A stretch of 64,000 nucleotides of DNA. Source: Bigelowiella natans CCMP2755 (lineage: Eukaryota > Protista > Cercozoa). The stretch covers positions 168,927 through 232,926 of the forward strand of contig ADNK01000828.1 in the NCBI GenBank assembly GCA_000320545.1, read 5' to 3'. Positions within the stretch are counted from its first letter, which is position 1, and every line of letters begins with the position of its first letter. The position numbers and the translations under genes are program-made. The notes beneath the pieces were generated by a model that saw only the letters and a list, made by a program, of their open reading frames with translations, had not been told where the DNA came from and ran no database searches. Positions 20,752 through 59,080 of the stretch are shown here, in pieces.

Positions 20752-22568
20752 TTAGGTAGTAGCTGTGCGCGGACAGGGCAACAGAAGTGGACGACAACGA
20801 GAATCGAGAAAAGTGGAATACGCGGTCACAATGAAATCAAAACTAAGAGGAAGAAGGAAGCAGGTTCTAACTCTCTTCCAAACCACCATTTTTTCCGTGA
20901 TACTTAGCGCGCGTTGTGTTGCTTCATTGCCACTCAGGGGCGGCACTGCGATTTCATGGAATCTTGCGGAATGTGCACAATGATGATTATTTTCATACAA
21001 AATATAGGTATTATATATATTTGGATATTTGCTGCGCCTTGTTCGCTCGATCCCTACTATGTAGGTATATATTTGATAGCTAATTTTTTTTTAAGGCGGA
21101 AATTATATACTTCATTGAACAACCATCTCATGAAGGAACTACATGTATACATCCATGCCCGTGATAGTATTTCTCAATTTCTGTCTTCTTCACTTCGGTG
21201 TCGGCTACTGCTACGGCTCTTGACTATCAACCTGACACTATTTTTCTCAGAAGATTCCATACTTACATACCACGGTAGCAGTGGGCTAATGTATGAAGTA
21301 ACCGCCTTGACAGGAGCAGAGGCTGCAGCATCAGCTAATGCGGATGCAAAGCTTGCGACGATCGAAACAAAGGCGGTGGGTTGGATTTTTGCCGTCGTAA
21401 TATCTCTAATGGTAGGGATATTATTTCTGCTTTCAAATGTCTCATCATTATCATCATTATCATCATCATGATTCTTTGTTCGTTTTCTGGAAGTGGTTAG
21501 GCCTGTTTGACGAGAGAACCCTGCACTATTTTTTCCATAAACTCTACAATTGCTACTATTTACACTTGTAATATTGCTTGTGATATTATTACTAGAAAAA
21601 GAATTACCAGCGCTCTGCTGCTGGTGTTGTTGTTTTTGCCGATACCGGTCCTGATGATGTTCCTCCATCAAGATCATCTTTGGAGCAGCAGCTCGTAGGA
21701 GGGTTTGGAAAATTGGTTGCTTCCCTCTACGGTCAAAAACTTGTTGATGCATTGGCACTATCTCCATCTGATTCTTATAATACTCTTCATCCCCATCACT
21801 GTCGTCAGAGAAAATACCCTTATACCATGCTACGTTTTCCAATCCGTCAAATACTGCTGCGGCTTCATCCGTATTTCGCATTTCTTCAGGTAAATTAATT
21901 CCCCCAAATAGCGCCACATCAACATTTCGCGGACCATCATATCGAAGAAATGCCCAAGAAAGAGTAGGAAGAAGTCCTAAACTCATGCCCCCTAATAGTG
22001 ATTTCTTAAAGATCGCTACTTCGCTGAAATGTGCATCAAGACGACGCTGGAAGTAATCCGTTGCTGCCCGCGAGAAAGCAGGATCTACACGAGTATCACG
22101 AAGTGCCTCACGGTCAAGCTTATGATATTCAGCCCAGTAGTGAGCAGTGTGCATAACATTAGTTATCGAATAGTGGCTCTTTCCGTCGAAACAATCACGG
22201 AGCTTGAGTGAAGAATCCAGCATCTCAAGAGTGGCCACACGTTTGCTGTGATCCACCAAAAGTAGTCGCAACCTATTTCGTCGTTCCATCTAGAACATCA
22301 GATAATTGTGAGTGCTAATTATGAATGAAAATATAAATCAGGCAGTGTTAAATCTGAAGAAGTTACCACAAGAATGTACCTCTAGGTCGTGAGCACTAAC
22401 TGTTGACCAGCCAACCCAGGTTGCCCTTGCCGCCCATGCAACAGATTTCCGCAATCGTGTCAAACGTGTCGGAGCAGCCAATGCAACCAAAACACTTCCA
22501 GCGGAGAGGTGAGCCAGAGGCACAACTTCCTTTCTGAAGATGTCTACTCGGGGGGTGGAGGATGCCAT
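20752..22568 (-). CDS. Hypothetical protein (orphan, intron-poor); 3' end approximate
   Basis: Exon 1 MASSTPRVDIFRK..AHDLE|gtacat splices in phase 0 to ttctag|MERRNRLRLLL.. (371-codon open frame 21174-22289 with a globular-looking N-half). Probable donor at PLLPW|gtatgt. Downstream exons uncertain. No family recognised. Confidence 0.65.
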
Positions 22569-23035: not shown

Positions 23036-23112
23036 TATTGGCTGTGGGATTCGAACACCACGAAACCCCGCGCCTTAAGTGCGGGTGCGTTAGACCACTC
23101 CGCCAAGCCAAA
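23036..23112 (-). pseudogene. Degenerate tRNA-Leu(UAA) / tRNA-derived element
   Basis: Reverse complement tttggcttggcggagtggtctaacgcacccgcacttaaggcgcggggtttcgtggtgttcgaatcccacagccaata: A-box TGGCGGAGTGG, B-box GTTCGAATC, acceptor stem TTGGCT/AGCCAA, anticodon loop CT-TAA-GG. It has a 1:72 mismatch, a mismatch in the anticodon stem, a short variable arm for a Leu tRNA and a T-stem bulge. Confidence 0.7.
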
Positions 23113-36801: not shown

Positions 36802-37199
36802 CGACTTTCGTTAACGTACAGAGGTGTGAATTTGAGGTCACACTTCCTATAAACTTACGGCCTTCAGATTGCTACAGGTGATTCTTGTCAACAATTGCTA
36901 CGTAGGGGATAACATTAGCTCATATTTCAAATATTAGGTTGGAAATGGCATCCCACGACAATCCAATTGTTTGCGGTTACAGTAGATATTTTTCCGTTAC
37001 ATCCGCTTTTTTCACATAATTAACGTTGCTGTTTCGATTAAAATATTCCTCAATGTAAAAGTCAAGAGTTGAGTTGAAAGGTGAAGCATTTTTAGCAATT
37101 CACCCGTCTCGTTATTACGCAAAGCTAGAAAGAAACAGAACGGCGTGACATCATCATTCATGCATGATTGTTCATCATCATTTAAGCTACTAAAAACAT

Positions 37200-38200
37200 G
37201 CACTACTCTCTAGACTCCAGCTAGCTAGCCATTCCCATGTCAAGAAGTCATTGTGCAGATTCATGCGGCAAGGTGGCCATCCAAATTTGATGTGCTGTGT
37301 GGACTGTCCACAAACTTCATGATCTAGACTAGTAATTCTAGAGATGACAAAGATGTTCAAAGTTTGTGCGCAAATGAACATGAACCATGCTTTTCATTGA
37401 GCTGTGCTAGTGTGGTCCAGTGGTGGCCAGCTTGCGAAGCTACATTTTTTTGAAGCAACTAGCTAGCTAGTAGGTGAGCAGATATTGTTGCAACAAAGCT
37501 CTCTAGCTCTGCTGCTCTGGAGCTAAGCTAGCTAGCTAGTACGCTCTAACTAGCTAGCTAGCGCTACTCAAGCAATGCTAGAGTGCTACAGTGACATGCT
37601 CTAGTGGTGCTGACAACCGACACTAGATAGCTAGCTAGCTAGCTAGGACAGCTACGCTAGTACGCCTTCATTCTAGCTTTGTCTAGTCATGCTAGCATGC
37701 TAGCATGCTAGAATGCGTGAGAATGAACGTGCCAGACACAACTAGCTAGCTAGACAAATGTGGGCATGCTAGCATGCCTACTAGCCTAGCTGTAGCTAGC
37801 TAGATGCATTCTAGCATTGTTAGATTGCTAACTAGCTAGATTGGGCACGGCGAGCGCTGAGATGTCTAGATGTGCATCTAGCTAGCTAGCTCTAGAGCTA
37901 TGATCCACACACCTAGCTAGCTAGACATTTCTAGACCTTCTTGCTGGAAGATGCTAGAATGTTTCATCCACAGATCTAGAGATCTAGAGACTCTAGAGTT
38001 GAATCTGATGCACGCGAGCAGTGACAATGTCACTCATCAATCACATGACAAACAACAACGTGTAGCTACACTAGAGTAGACTTCGTGTCTGATCATCTTC
38101 TCACTGTCTTTTATTCACGAGATGGTTACTCTGTGGTGTGCATGCTGTAGCAGACCAGACCAAAATGTCATTGCAACTAGCTGGCAAAGAAACTGCATCG
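37200..38200. other. Strongest CTAG/TAGC/CATG palindrome island, between convergent 3' ends
   Basis: Many (TAGC)n runs. (CATGCTAG)3 at 37688-37711, AGTGACA-A-TGTCACT at 38020-38034, GTGTAGCTACAC at 38060-38071, GTGGAC-T-GTCCAC at ~37300. Confidence 0.9.
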
Positions 38201-38289: not shown

Positions 38290-39007
38290 TTAGCCAGCAG
38301 TTGGTCCGACTCCGGTCCAGCTGAAATACTTCATTCTACCTGCAGCTCTGTTGAGGAACATATCAATTGTGTGTTTGTTGTCATTGCATCGTCATCATCA
38401 TCATTAAGCATTCACATGTGCTTCACAAATAGTTTCTCAAGTCGTACTACCTTTTCCAGCTTGGCACGCAGCTCTTTACAGTCATCAAACCCGCATAAAT
38501 TAAGCACAAACACCCCACAATAACGTACACCGATCCCAAAAAGAAATTTTCACCCCCCAGAATAGTTACAGTTGACAACATGACGTGCTTCTCGCCGTCA
38601 AAATCTGAAACTCGGAAGTTGTTTTGTATTGTCAGCTCAAGCGTGTCCCCTGCTTCGAAATCCATATCATTGATCTTGCGATGTAATTTACTGAATCTTG
38701 GAAACCCGGCGACACGAAACCAAACTCTAAATTCTTGAGAAGTCGGAAGTGGTAACGTATTGCCCTCTGTTCCAATTCTCGAAACGTCCTGATTTTCATT
38801 CGGAAAATGTTGATAAAGCCTGACTCAAACGAAATTAAACGATACATACATCATATTGAGTTTTAAGGAAAACTATCTTTGTACCGCCAAGTCGTCAGGA
38901 TTTGAGATGTTCAGAAATTTGTCATCATCAGACTCCCATGCAATGTCACTGCCGTCAAAATTCTGAAGTGATATTTATACTATGTGCATGCTTGTGTGTA
39001 TGTGGAG

Positions 39008-47059: not shown

Positions 47060-48304
47060 CTAACCAGCAAAAGTCTTTCCATCATAGCCCATGTTCTCAC
47101 GAGCAACGTCTCGAAATTCAATGTAAACTTTCGTGCCTTCTATTCCAAATTCCCTACAAAAAAGTCATTCAATTGAAACGTAGGCATGCGATTTTGTCTA
47201 AGAATGATCTCACTTTAGCATTTTACATAGCCCAGCAGATACTTTCTTGTTGTTTTCTAAATTGATAGAACCGAGAGAAACCACTTGGCACATTGCAGCA
47301 GGCCTGAGATGAAGTTCAGCATGGAACATCAAGTCACTCTCAATACCTCAATTCAAACTATTGTTTTATACCCAGTTTCTCCACCCCATATTATGTCCAA
47401 GTTATCTTGCACAACAACTGCCACGTATGATTCAGGCTTTCCTGTGCGAATTCACATGTAAACACATTTAATCCAAAAAATCTCAAAATGAGCTCACCGA
47501 GAGAGTTTGCAACCAACTTTGAAGCAGCTTTCATAAATTCCTTCATTCAAGATACAAATTAATACTTTGAATACCAGAGGCAATATTGGTGAAAACCATC
47601 TTCTTATCCTTTTCCATAGACACGCTAGTGGCGACCTTCCAATGTTCAAGAATCAAACAAAGTTCCTCAAGATTTAAGAATATGTTATTAGTTTGTTTCA
47701 TGGTGCTTCTTCTGCGAGTCGCAGCACTACCGAGAGGGAAGGGTCTCCAATATCTTTAGGATCCGTCATTTCGCCTTTTATACAAGACAGTCGTATCATG
47801 TGGAGACACACATTCGTTATCATTAATACCAGTGCCTTAACAATGAATGGCGACAAAAGGCGATGTTTTATATTGACAATCTAGAACAACATTCGACCTA
47901 CCTGCGGTATTCAGGGCATGGATGCGTACGGAACGAGTACTTTTATCGAAGATTCCAACTCCTCCCCGTAGTAAAAGACTGCTGTCCATGACCACCCATA
48001 GGGAGGAGAGAAAATTCAACGAGTAAAACATAGAAGAAATTCTGGCTACTATATACCACCTTGATGTTTGGAGTGGTAAAGATGACCTGAATGCAGCGGG
48101 TAGAACTGATGCAGAAACTCTTCTCCTCGCTGCAGCACCCACACGACGGCGGATAGGGGTAGTGTTGTACCCATTAGTAGTAGTTGCTGGAGGCGTACAA
48201 GAAGAAATGTGATAGCTTCCAATGCACGGTGATGCAATGAATGAGTGAAGGAGAAGCAGTCCAATGCCAAAGATCACCGTCAACAGCAGCACCATTCTCG
48301 CCAT
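47060..48304 (-). CDS. MIF: Macrophage migration inhibitory factor (MIF)/tautomerase family protein with N-terminal signal peptide plus transit-like leader
   Basis: Spliced product MARMVLLLTVIFGIGLLLLHSFIASP..(Ser/Thr/Arg-rich)..LNTA|GEMTDPKDIGDPSLS|VATSVSMEKDKKM|EFMKAASKLVANSL|GKPESYVAVVVQDNLDIIWGGETG|PAAMCQVVSLGSINLENNKKVSAGLCKMLK|EFGIEGTKVYIEFRDVARENMGYDGKTFAG*. Matches MIF consensus (GKP..YV, SIG.I...N, YI.F.D, G..G.TF). Confidence 0.92.
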
Positions 48305-48395
48305 TGTGATTCGTTTGTTCCTTCGCACGGAGGGAAGAGGGAGAAGAAAGGGCAGCAAAATCTAATTATTTGCCTGCGACAAAGGGAGACAGTAT

Positions 48396-48498
48396 GTCTC
48401 ATCTGATGAAATGCATGCGACAATGAAGAAATCATGTCTCATCTGATGAAATGCATGCGACAAGGAAGGACATAAGGTCTCATCTGATGAAATGCATG
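48396..48498. repeat. 3 x ~40 bp tandem repeat with palindromic cores just upstream of MIF
   Basis: GTCTCATCTGATGAAATGCATG at 48396, 48436, 48477. Each unit contains TCATC-T-GATGA and ATGCAT. Confidence 0.9.
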
Positions 48499-48956
48499 GA
48501 TAAGGAAAACATCATGACGATCTGAAACATCGTTTTTCACAATGCTTAGCGATGATGAACTTTCTCCAATCTAGGACATTATTTTACGATGTTTGTGCGA
48601 TGATAAAGCTTTACCTTGATTTCCATGGATTTCGAAGATCATCCACTGGAGAACGATAAAGGCAAATTGGAGCGTTAATTGTCGCTGTATCCCTTAAAAT
48701 TCCCAAATTAGAAACGTGAAGATAATTTGTCGAATTAAGGTTGTCGCAGTCGGGATTTGCTGCACTTGCAAAACTAAGAAAATGTTCTCTGACGGCATGT
48801 CTGCTCGTACATTAAGCCATAAAGCCGTTTCGTAAAAATGGCACCCATTTGTAGGAAAAACGGTGATAATCTCGGCGGTAGATCAATCTTTCTCCTCCTC
48901 TGTTCTCCCGAGCCGATGACAACTGTGCATGCTGGAATGGTTGGTTCGGCAAAATG

Positions 48957-49580
48957 GCGAACCTGACAGTCGGAAAGACGGCCGGTCATGGCATGGGGCC
49001 GCAATCCCAGACCCGGAGCTTCCATTTTTGCAGTTGCATTTTTGCACTTCATCACAGCAGAAGCTCGTCGCAACACACAGGAGTGCGCGACCTGAATGCA
49101 ACTTGATCAAAAATGCATGCGCTGTCACCAGGTCAGTTCAGCCAATCCAGTTATAATGAGCGAACCTGGCAGTCGGAAAGGCCTGCTCTAGTGCTAGCCT
49201 GGCCTGGCTCAGAGCGCAGCTGAGACGGCCGGCATGGCTAGATGGCTTCATGGGTGCCGCAACACCAGACCCAAGCTAGCAAGCTTCCATTTTTTGCAGT
49301 CACGTTTTTGGCACACAGATGCGATTTGCATCACGTCACTGAACCACTCAACCCAAAATTGTGATGTGACAACCACGCGACCACCAGACCAAACAGTCCA
49401 AACCACAAACTGATGACAGCCGGAACTAGAGAGAGACGGTCGGCATCACTACTAGACTAGATCACACAAATCACTCAATCGCTAGATCGAACATCGCTAG
49501 ATCGGGTCGCAATCCTACCTAGCCAGACCCAAAGCCAAGCTCTCATCTAGTCATTTTTGCAGTTGTGTTTTTTGCAACCA
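48957..49580. repeat. Three degenerate direct repeats (period ~200-250 bp) of increasing length
   Basis: Shared anchors cag(t/c)cggaa, gacgg(c/t)cgg, g(c/t)cgcaa..ccagaccc, agct, catttttgcag, tttttg(c/g)a at ~48967, ~49170, ~49417. Confidence 0.85.
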
Positions 49581-50120
49581 CAGACACGGTCGTGCACTCT
49601 GCATGCACGACGTGCATTGCATCGTGTGTGCTAGCCATTTGTTGCAAGCAGTCTAGCAGTGTGCACGATGACTTGCATGCGCACAATTGCATGCTGGCAT
49701 GGCCTAAATGACGCGATCATTGATTGCGGTAGAGCAGCAAGCAATGATGATCATGATGGGGGCACACATTGCGAAGTGCATCTAGCTAGCTATGACTACT
49801 AGCTAGATCTAGGGTTGTGTGGGCAGTGAGTGTGCAAGAACACGTCGTGCATGCTAGCATGGATGACCATGCTAGCATGCCTGCGCTTCGTTGCGCCCTG
49901 TGCTAGTATGCAGCATGGATGCAAAACTAGCAGAACAAGCAACGAGTGTCACATGCACGCGCATGATCGCTAGATCGATACGAAATTTTGTGAACAAATC
50001 GATTTGTGGCAAGTGAACAGGCATTCAACTTACACATTGCTACATGGACAGACACACTAGTCAAGCATAGTGCTGCACATCATGCACATTGTAGAGCATT
50101 ACATGTATTGTGTACACGCA
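49150..50120. other. CTAG/CATG palindrome island downstream of a minus-strand 3' end (tandem junction)
   Basis: CATGCTAGCATG twice (~49850, ~49870), GTCGTGCA..TGCACGAC (~49590-49612), tctagctagctatgactactagctagatctag. Lies 3' of the gene ending at 50324. Confidence 0.85.
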
Positions 50121-50323
50121 TCTTAATCATTGAAAGTTTAGTAGTGCTCATTTCGTTCGCGCTGTTTCGAGACACTATGAAGTGAGGTATCGTTGAATGC
50201 TTTACTTAATTCAAGATCAAAAAGATGTTCGTCGATGCTACGGTAAGAAACCTGATCCAATAGCAAGTTTAAGTCAAAACAAGATAGCCTGAAAGACACA
50301 ATAATAAAGTACCAAATTAAGGG

Positions 50324-58497: not shown

Positions 58498-59080
58498 TCA
58501 CGCTTTCTTCTCTACTTCTGCAAGATAGTTCATACGAGCTAAAATTACTTTCTTACTTGATTCTTGGAGCTCGCCAGCGAGAAAGAATTCATCTAAGAGA
58601 GCGAAAACCTAAGAGTAGAAGTTGCTTCATCAGTCCATTCGTAGAGTTGCGTCACATAAGCGTCACATAAGTGTCACATAAATGTAAATGTTACCTTATA
58701 AAATCCAAAGACAAGATCCAGTTCGCATACATCAACGAAGTAGTCGTCGAGGCATTCAACAAATAAATGAATTGCTTCAAGCATAGCCATCTCGTTGTCG
58801 CTTGGGTCGCAGCAAATTGTGAAGAACACACCCTTATACCGACGATAAACAAGAGTATAGTTTCGAAACTCCACGAAATTGGTGTACTTTGAAGGCCTAT
58901 CGTTTAAAGAAACCACTTCTCAGATTTTAGGTTTCAGTTTACTCGCATGATTAACCTTTGAATCAACGTTCTGTAGATTTCCGACTGAAGTTTTTTCTTC
59001 TCTTCGTGTTCGAACGACGAATACCATTTGGCAATTCGTGTCTGGCCTTGACGATTTTGAAGGATAAAGAAGTGGATCAT
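58498..59080 (-). CDS. AP2S1: AP-2 adaptor complex sigma subunit (divergent)
   Basis: Three exons: [42 protein letters not shown]|[67 protein letters not shown]|[52 protein letters not shown] and LDLVF.FYKV are sigma-2 type. Confidence 0.93.
58649..58681. repeat. 3 x 11 bp tandem repeat in sigma intron 2
   Basis: GCGTCACATAA GCGTCACATAA GTGTCACATAA. Confidence 0.9.

Follow-up and report, generated by a model that had tools for sequence, protein, structure and literature searches.

CTAG islands of Bigelowiella natans carry an 8-bp insertion with a 4-nt target duplication

CTAG islands and a tandem triple repeat

The 64-kb window, by which we mean the whole stretch of DNA that was analysed, is nuclear DNA of the chlorarachniophyte Bigelowiella natans, since a 371-aa ORF on its minus strand (21177-22289) is 100% identical to JGI Bigna1 protein 86999. 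The B. natans genome measures 94.7 Mb; its genes have about 8 introns each and are separated by a median of 960 bp (PMC13746701). The sole tRNA gene of the window is a tRNA-Leu (TAA) on the minus strand (23036-23112). Long (AT)n, (TG)n and (CA)n microsatellites are very common throughout and dominate all repeat searches, and homopolymeric amino-acid runs are very common within ORFs across the window.

The tetranucleotide CTAG occurs at a background of 0-3 copies per 500 bp and rises to 8-44 copies per 500 bp in five islands, which are distinguished by their CTAG count per 500 bp and together make up 3.5 kb, or 5.5% of the window. Wherever the neighbouring genes are recognisable, the islands appear to lie just beyond gene 3' ends.

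19.5-20.3 kb: CTAG island
37.1-38.1 kb: CTAG island
38450-38824, minus strand: CDC50 C-terminal exon (Pfam, E = 5.6e-30), facing the 37.1-38.1 kb island
up to ~46.1 kb, plus strand: ABC-transporter motifs (translations read by eye)
46.45-46.85 kb: CTAG island
49.2-50.0 kb: CTAG island, next to the repeat units
58.0-58.4 kb: CTAG island
58677-58919, minus strand: adaptor sigma-like exon (translation read by eye)

The densest island (37100-38100), directly 3' of the minus-strand CDC50-family gene, reaches 44 CTAGs per 500 bp and holds many (CTAG)3 runs as well as a recurring CATG-CTAG-CATG. The island beside the repeat units, which an earlier note on this DNA had pointed out, is real: positions 49001-50000 hold 23 CTAGs, against the background of 0-3 per 500 bp. 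Pfam gave no match for the ORFs flanking the 49-50 kb island, and a search for a homologue of the minus-strand ORF at 47840-48304 found none. We note that the minus-strand ORF 47837-48358 opens with a signal-peptide-like stretch, and that a 40-bp tandem repeat (48371-48516; 3.6 copies, 83% matches) sits between this ORF and the units, adjoining the latter on their left.

The units themselves are three tandem copies on the plus strand, each made of a core and a tail. They are listed here with their common anchors and with the number of CTAG scars, as defined in the next section.

48957-49159, plus strand: unit 1, core 48967-49033 (67 nt) plus tail; no CTAG, 0 scars; the empty-site reference
49160-49411, plus strand: unit 2, core 49170-49299 (130 nt) plus tail; 4 perfect scars; tail without CTAG
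49412-49686, plus strand: unit 3, core 49417-49562 (146 nt) plus tail; 5 perfect and 2 decayed scars
48967, 49170 and 49417 (units 1, 2 and 3): anchor CAGYCGGAA
48977, 49224 and 49435 (units 1, 2 and 3): anchor GACGGYCGG
49007, 49265 and 49523 (units 1, 2 and 3): anchor CCAGACCC
49025, 49291 and 49554 (units 1, 2 and 3): anchor TTTTTGCAG

The earlier note had described three homologous units with shared anchors and with cores of about 67, 130 and 146 nt, and we find both descriptions accurate. The distance from first to last anchor is exactly 67, 130 and 146 nt in units 1, 2 and 3, and global alignment against shuffles, with the scars removed first, gives z = 11.9 for units 1 and 2, 8.0 for units 1 and 3, and 5.6 for units 2 and 3. 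After scar removal, identity is 83% across whole units and 88-91% in the cores, units 1 and 2 being the closest pair (91% core identity). The 21-nt left anchor matches the window only at 48957 and 49160, with a shuffle expectation of 0, and anchor searches found no further copies of the unit elsewhere in the window.

No convincing ORF crosses the units, the overlapping ORFs looking non-coding, and no tRNA lies near the locus. Rfam returned nothing credible, either for the whole window at gathering thresholds or for 48300-50300 at E-value thresholds; a match to mir-932 was rejected at 19.7 bits versus a gathering score of 54. A scan for bacterial-type promoters and terminators was uninformative.

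The region 48900-50000 is nearly free of TpA outside CTAG and is enriched in the dinucleotides TG, CA and GC. Unit 1 has 2 TA in 203 nt (observed/expected 0.17). CTAG accounts for all four TAs of unit 2 and for 9 of 11 TAs of unit 3, a placement that would follow if young scars had been inserted into DNA poor in TA.

The 8-bp insertion rule

The inserts listed in the earlier note are all present in units 2 and 3, and its statement that they hold CTAG or duplicate adjacent bases is correct. In fact, one single rule underlies both properties: an 8-bp insertion, composed of CTAG and a 4-nt target duplication, converts XXXX to XXXX-CTAG-XXXX. We are confident that units 2 and 3 grew by this one stereotyped event.

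We define a perfect scar as a CTAG between two identical 4-nt flanks, and leave out (CTAG)n runs where stated. When all CTAGs are counted, 51 of the 244 in the window are perfect scars, and 49 of these 51 lie inside the five islands, where their density is about one per 70 bp. Without (CTAG)n runs the count is 38 of 199 (19%), compared with 0.7% for nine other palindromic tetramer cores, and the excess of exact flanking repeats around CTAG is 27-fold. The length of the duplication is fixed, since among CTAGs outside runs flanks of 4 nt give 38 matches and flanks of 3 and 5 nt only 2 and 3. A comparison of all 4-nt direct repeats whose copies lie 0-10 nt apart gave one outlier only, CTAG at spacer 4, and XXXX-CCGG-XXXX is not enriched in the window. 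Within the islands, 36 of the 75 CTAGs outside runs are perfect scars; shuffling the right flanks among the same CTAGs yields a mean of 1.6 and a maximum of 9 in 20,000 permutations. About half of the CTAGs in the window's five islands are explained by the 8-bp event. Plain 4-bp tandem duplications, with CTAG rotations set aside, are not enriched in islands (9.5 per kb versus 8.2 per kb outside), and no variant footprints were seen among the scars.

The target shows a symmetric preference. Its first position is never G and its fourth never C (0 of 38 in each case), giving H-N-N-D, and a C at -1 and a G at +5 are each found at 16 of the 38 scars. The resulting motif, (C)-H-N-N-D-(G), is weakly palindromic with CWWG preferred, and the favoured targets are CATG (6), ATCG (3) and CTAG itself (10-13). 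When adjacent copies with one substitution are included, the (CTAG)n runs of the window comprise 13 of odd and 3 of even length, as expected because an 8-bp insertion into a CTAG target gives (CTAG)3.

Duplications with one mismatch are weakly in excess (17 of 199, versus 4.9% in controls), and the units have diverged by 9-17% from one another. Because one-mismatch scars are barely enriched while the units differ to this extent, the scars are, judged by sequence divergence, younger than the units.

Scars and empty sites in units 2 and 3

The scars of units 2 and 3, and of the island beyond them, are as follows.

49184-49195: TGCT-CTAG-TGCT; its removal uncovers a nested CCTG-CTAG-CCTG, CTAG at 49194 (recursive-removal events at 49188 and 49186)
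49234-49245: ATGG-CTAG-ATGG, CTAG at 49238; empty site is ATGG of unit 1 (48988-48991)
49272-49283: CAAG-CTAG-CAAG, CTAG at 49276; empty sites are GGAG|CTTCC of unit 1 (from 49015) and CAAG|CTCTC of unit 3 (from 49536)
49422-49433: decayed scar GGAA-CTAG-AGAG, CTAG at 49426; an 8-bp insert in exact register with GGAA|AGACGG of unit 1 (from 48972)
49448-49459: ACTA-CTAG-ACTA; its removal uncovers a nested ATCA-CTAG-ATCA (events at 49452 and 49449)
49478-49504: two ATCG-CTAG-ATCG scars 15 nt apart, reflecting either two hits or a single hit later copied by a 15-bp tandem duplication
49515-49526: decayed scar CTAC-CTAG-CCAG, CTAG at 49519; in register with AATC|CCAG|ACCC of unit 1 (from 49003)
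49543-49554: TCAT-CTAG-TCAT, CTAG at 49547; empty site is CCAT|TTTT of unit 1 (from 49022) and unit 2 (from 49287)
49580-50010: rest of the island, with perfect scars whose CTAG lies at 49653 (CAGT), 49854 and 49872 (both CATG) and 49970 (ATCG)

The cores of units 2 and 3 contain 11 CTAGs, and every one of them obeys the rule if decayed scars are counted along with perfect ones. Recursive removal of scars takes nothing from unit 1, four events (32 nt, one of them nested) from unit 2 and five events (40 nt, again one nested) from unit 3; the segment 49160-49311 thereby shrinks from 152 to 120 nt and the core of unit 2 from 130 to 98 nt. Paralogous empty sites are present for three perfect scars (CTAG at 49238, 49276 and 49547) and for both 8-bp inserts that we infer to be decayed scars (CTAG at 49426 and 49519). 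The latter two each carry two substitutions in one copy of the duplicate, and those at 49422-49433 are two transitions in the right-hand copy.

Units 2 and 3 hold 142 extra nucleotides in all, of which perfect and decayed scars cover 88. What is left over is made up of one block in each unit, 28 nt long in unit 2 and about 20 nt in unit 3, neither of which could be derived from decayed scars or from its flanks, and of a few indels of 1-3 nt. In units 2 and 3 alike, an insertion has struck the core at its first AT(G/C)G. Because each scar duplicates its own unit's variant of this tetranucleotide, in both copies, the sequences point to independent hits at a preferred site.

Scar-like arrangements with other cores also occur at the locus. 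GTCA-CCAG-GTCA in the tail of unit 1 (49124-49135) and the homologous ACCA-CCAG-ACCA in the tail of unit 2 (49380-49391) have a CCAG core; the duplicates differ alike between the units, with a matching change in both copies. Two sequences with a CTGG core, CATG-CTGG-CATG (49690) and CATG-CTGG-AATG (48928), resemble CTAG scars that have possibly decayed at the TA. GCATGC/TGCA palindromes accompany the scars of 49580-50010. The core of the island (49600-49880) contains perfect GCATGC-rich inverted repeats. One has 14-nt arms at 49601/49841; a second pair of arms, GCATGCTAGCATGG / CCATGCTAGCATGC at 49849-49880, consists of two CATG scars in mirror arrangement.

According to the earlier note, ordinary sequence appeared to have been converted into island sequence by a process of insertion for which the triple repeat serves as an internal control. 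Growth by insertion and the value of the repeat as a control both stand, but the inserts are not miscellaneous: they reflect one 8-bp event. Scars confined to unit 2 count by parsimony as gains, since unit 3 is the outgroup to the closest pair, units 1 and 2. Moreover, deletion could never create an excess of exact flanking repeats. Support for the positional gradient also proposed there is weak. Scar counts do rise toward the island (0, 4 and 5-7), but there are only three units, and at 100-bp resolution the density does not change monotonically: CTAG is missing from the tails of units 1 and 2, scars cluster in the cores, and density is roughly flat across 49.2-50.0 kb. The clustering of scars in cores, together with hits into existing scars, suggests that insertions favour sequence already modified. 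Unit 1 may be free of scars through its position outside a targeted zone or through purifying selection, the data from n = 3 units fitting either way.

Possible sources of the scars

Our preferred explanation, held with moderate confidence, is that the scars were left by a cut-and-paste element that had CTAG ends and duplicated 4 bp of its target. The sequences show that an ancestral intergenic-spacer unit of about 200 bp was triplicated in tandem, and that the two copies nearer the island then gained repeated, sometimes nested, 8-bp insertions. The fixed 4-nt duplication, the weakly palindromic target and its CWWG preference suggest a dimeric transposase or integrase, whose cuts, staggered by 4 bp, would give a duplication of constant length. 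The CTAG filler would represent the terminal nucleotides of the element left at excision, and its uniformity could arise either from 2 nt contributed by each inverted end (CT...AG) or from the annealing of self-complementary 4-nt CTAG overhangs; perfect annealing of such overhangs would explain why the footprint is so uniform. The element would land preferentially in the islands at gene 3' ends, where its footprints would build up; hits into existing CTAG would produce (CTAG)3 and render the process self-reinforcing, and unit 1 would have been spared as lying outside the targeted zone or under constraint. Two features expected of footprints are present, namely a fixed-length duplication on both sides of the scar (38 of 199 CTAGs) and comparable sites without the scar (for three perfect and two decayed scars). 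The filler is constant, CTAG being the only enriched spacer; its origin from element termini is putative.

Tc1/mariner transposases provide a precedent for such a filler, since they cut inside the element, so that terminal nucleotides stay between the target duplicates (PMC12255080). Their excision footprints (e.g., Sleeping Beauty, TA-C(A/T)G-TA) resemble the scars in keeping both duplicates with constant terminal nucleotides in between (PMC12255080). The scars differ from Tc1/mariner footprints in that they duplicate 4 nt of almost any sequence (H-N-N-D) rather than TA, have CTAG as their invariable filler and are packed at about one per 70 bp into discrete islands; no element was found in the 64 kb. 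Tc1/mariner ends are inverted, as in Tc1 and Minos, and the filler is consequently palindromic or nearly so. Similarly, cleavage by piggyBac/PiggyMac leaves 4-nt 5' overhangs centred on TA; TTAA there and CTAG here are both 4-nt palindromes with a central TA, whose self-complementary overhangs can anneal to a uniform junction. However, piggyBac duplicates TTAA itself and excises precisely, with no flanking duplication of other sequence, whereas the scars described here need no pre-existing CTAG.

Several observations weigh against the footprint explanation. No intact element, with a 4-bp duplication, CT...AG or CTAG ends and inverted termini, was found in the 64-kb window, where searches for CTAG pairs and inverted repeats gave chance or microsatellite matches only, and no transposase gene was identified there. 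At about one scar per 70 bp of island, very many cycles of insertion and excision would be needed, and the absence of variant footprints is unusual for end-joining repair. We know of no described transposon superfamily with a footprint of CTAG plus a 4-nt duplication. A host activity seeding CTAG with no mobile element involved, which was also the fallback of the earlier note, therefore stays a serious rival, because neither element nor transposase is found in 64 kb and scar density is very high. A nuclease or domesticated transposase would produce 4-nt 5' overhangs in 3'-end islands, and both ends would be filled in and joined via a constant CTAG filler. We consider this possible but rather unlikely. 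Such an activity would generate the same scar statistics as the footprint model, and the strict uniformity of the scars and their confinement to 3'-end islands fit a dedicated host process. Against it, no candidate enzyme has been identified, and no repair pathway is known to us that would insert one and the same palindromic tetranucleotide without a template.

The remaining explanations, namely TOP2 fill-in, slippage, point-mutation sinks and polymerase theta, each fail a direct test. Breaks of the TOP2 type with a 4-bp stagger, concentrated where genes converge, could be filled in and joined into small duplications; the stagger is exactly 4 nt, the islands lie at gene 3' junctions, as illustrated by the CDC50 exon facing the 37.1-38.1 kb island, and a link to convergent transcription is conceivable. 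Trapped Top2 in yeast causes de novo duplications of 2-4 bp. These duplications share the filled 4-nt stagger but have no filler, whereas CTAG is always present here. The expected product, XXXX-XXXX, leaves CTAG unexplained, and such plain duplications show no enrichment in islands, which makes this source improbable. It is more improbable still that no insertion took place at all, and that (CTAG)n slippage or decay of CCGG, CCAG or CTGG to CTAG produced the pattern while unit 1 was shortened by deletion. Runs of (CTAG)2-4 do exist, XXXX-CCAG-XXXX and XXXX-CTGG-XXXX variants are found at 49124, 49380 and 49690, and deletion between 4-nt repeats could erase a scar precisely. But single-CTAG scars with 8-bp differences from their empty sites are impossible by slippage or substitution, deletion cannot yield the 27-fold excess of exact flanking repeats, and XXXX-CCGG-XXXX lacks enrichment. 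Most scars hold a single CTAG and run lengths are biased to odd numbers; in place of the smooth fall-off in length expected of head-to-tail slippage copies, runs of n = 2, 3 and 4 number 6, 7 and 3. For about half of the CTAGs in the islands, absence of insertion is thus contradicted, and it could apply to part of the remainder. We regard templated or snap-back insertion by polymerase theta at recurrent breaks, a mechanism put forward in the earlier note, as the least probable source. Like the products of theta-mediated end joining (TMEJ), the inserts are small, arise at break sites and involve the flanks, in that they duplicate the adjacent 4 nt, and the 28-nt block specific to unit 2 holds short inverted repeats. 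TMEJ, however, leaves inserts of variable length copied from the flanks, whereas the scars duplicate exactly 4 nt every time and CTAG, being absent from the empty sites, has no local template. In addition, the remaining inserts match the flanks within ±60 nt no better than shuffles do, with the one exception of a single local 12-nt duplication.

A literature search found neither a CTAG-scar footprint nor an account of B. natans CTAG islands or intergenic palindromes. Scanning metagenomes with the double CATG scar returned 22 loci, of which those inspected looked unrelated. One of them, L006, looks bacterial. Another, L008 (Ga0115005_10017904), is a marine metagenome contig that looks like DNA of an intron-poor, diatom-like alga. 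Among its products is an FtsY-like protein, plastid-targeted, whose signal ends in AF; the contig contains a similar GCATGC/CATG-CTAG-CATG block at 130-240 and an ATGG-CTAGCTAG-ATGG upstream of a NUDIX-like gene, a single instance that may be coincidence.

There is a real chance that the scars are further removed from anything described than a variant footprint. We tentatively propose that a previously undescribed and highly active process in B. natans writes CTAG with a 4-nt duplication at gene 3'-end junctions, through either a new type of transposon whose footprint is unusually uniform or a host enzyme without a mobile element, and builds the CTAG-rich islands of the genome de novo that may then serve as termination or boundary elements. 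The scar statistics presented here are the first statistical test of the CTAG scar. Because the 4-nt duplication marks each scar as an insertion, the scars can be read without an outgroup, and the triple repeat adds matched empty sites. The scar model provides a concrete, testable hypothesis, and points to a putative transposase or nuclease with a defined target rule. Extrapolated from the window to 94.7 Mb, and if the pattern holds, the genome would contain tens of thousands of scars. Were the process genome-wide, a large class of intergenic sequence in this model chlorarachniophyte would stem from one enzymatic event, rather than from inheritance or point mutation.
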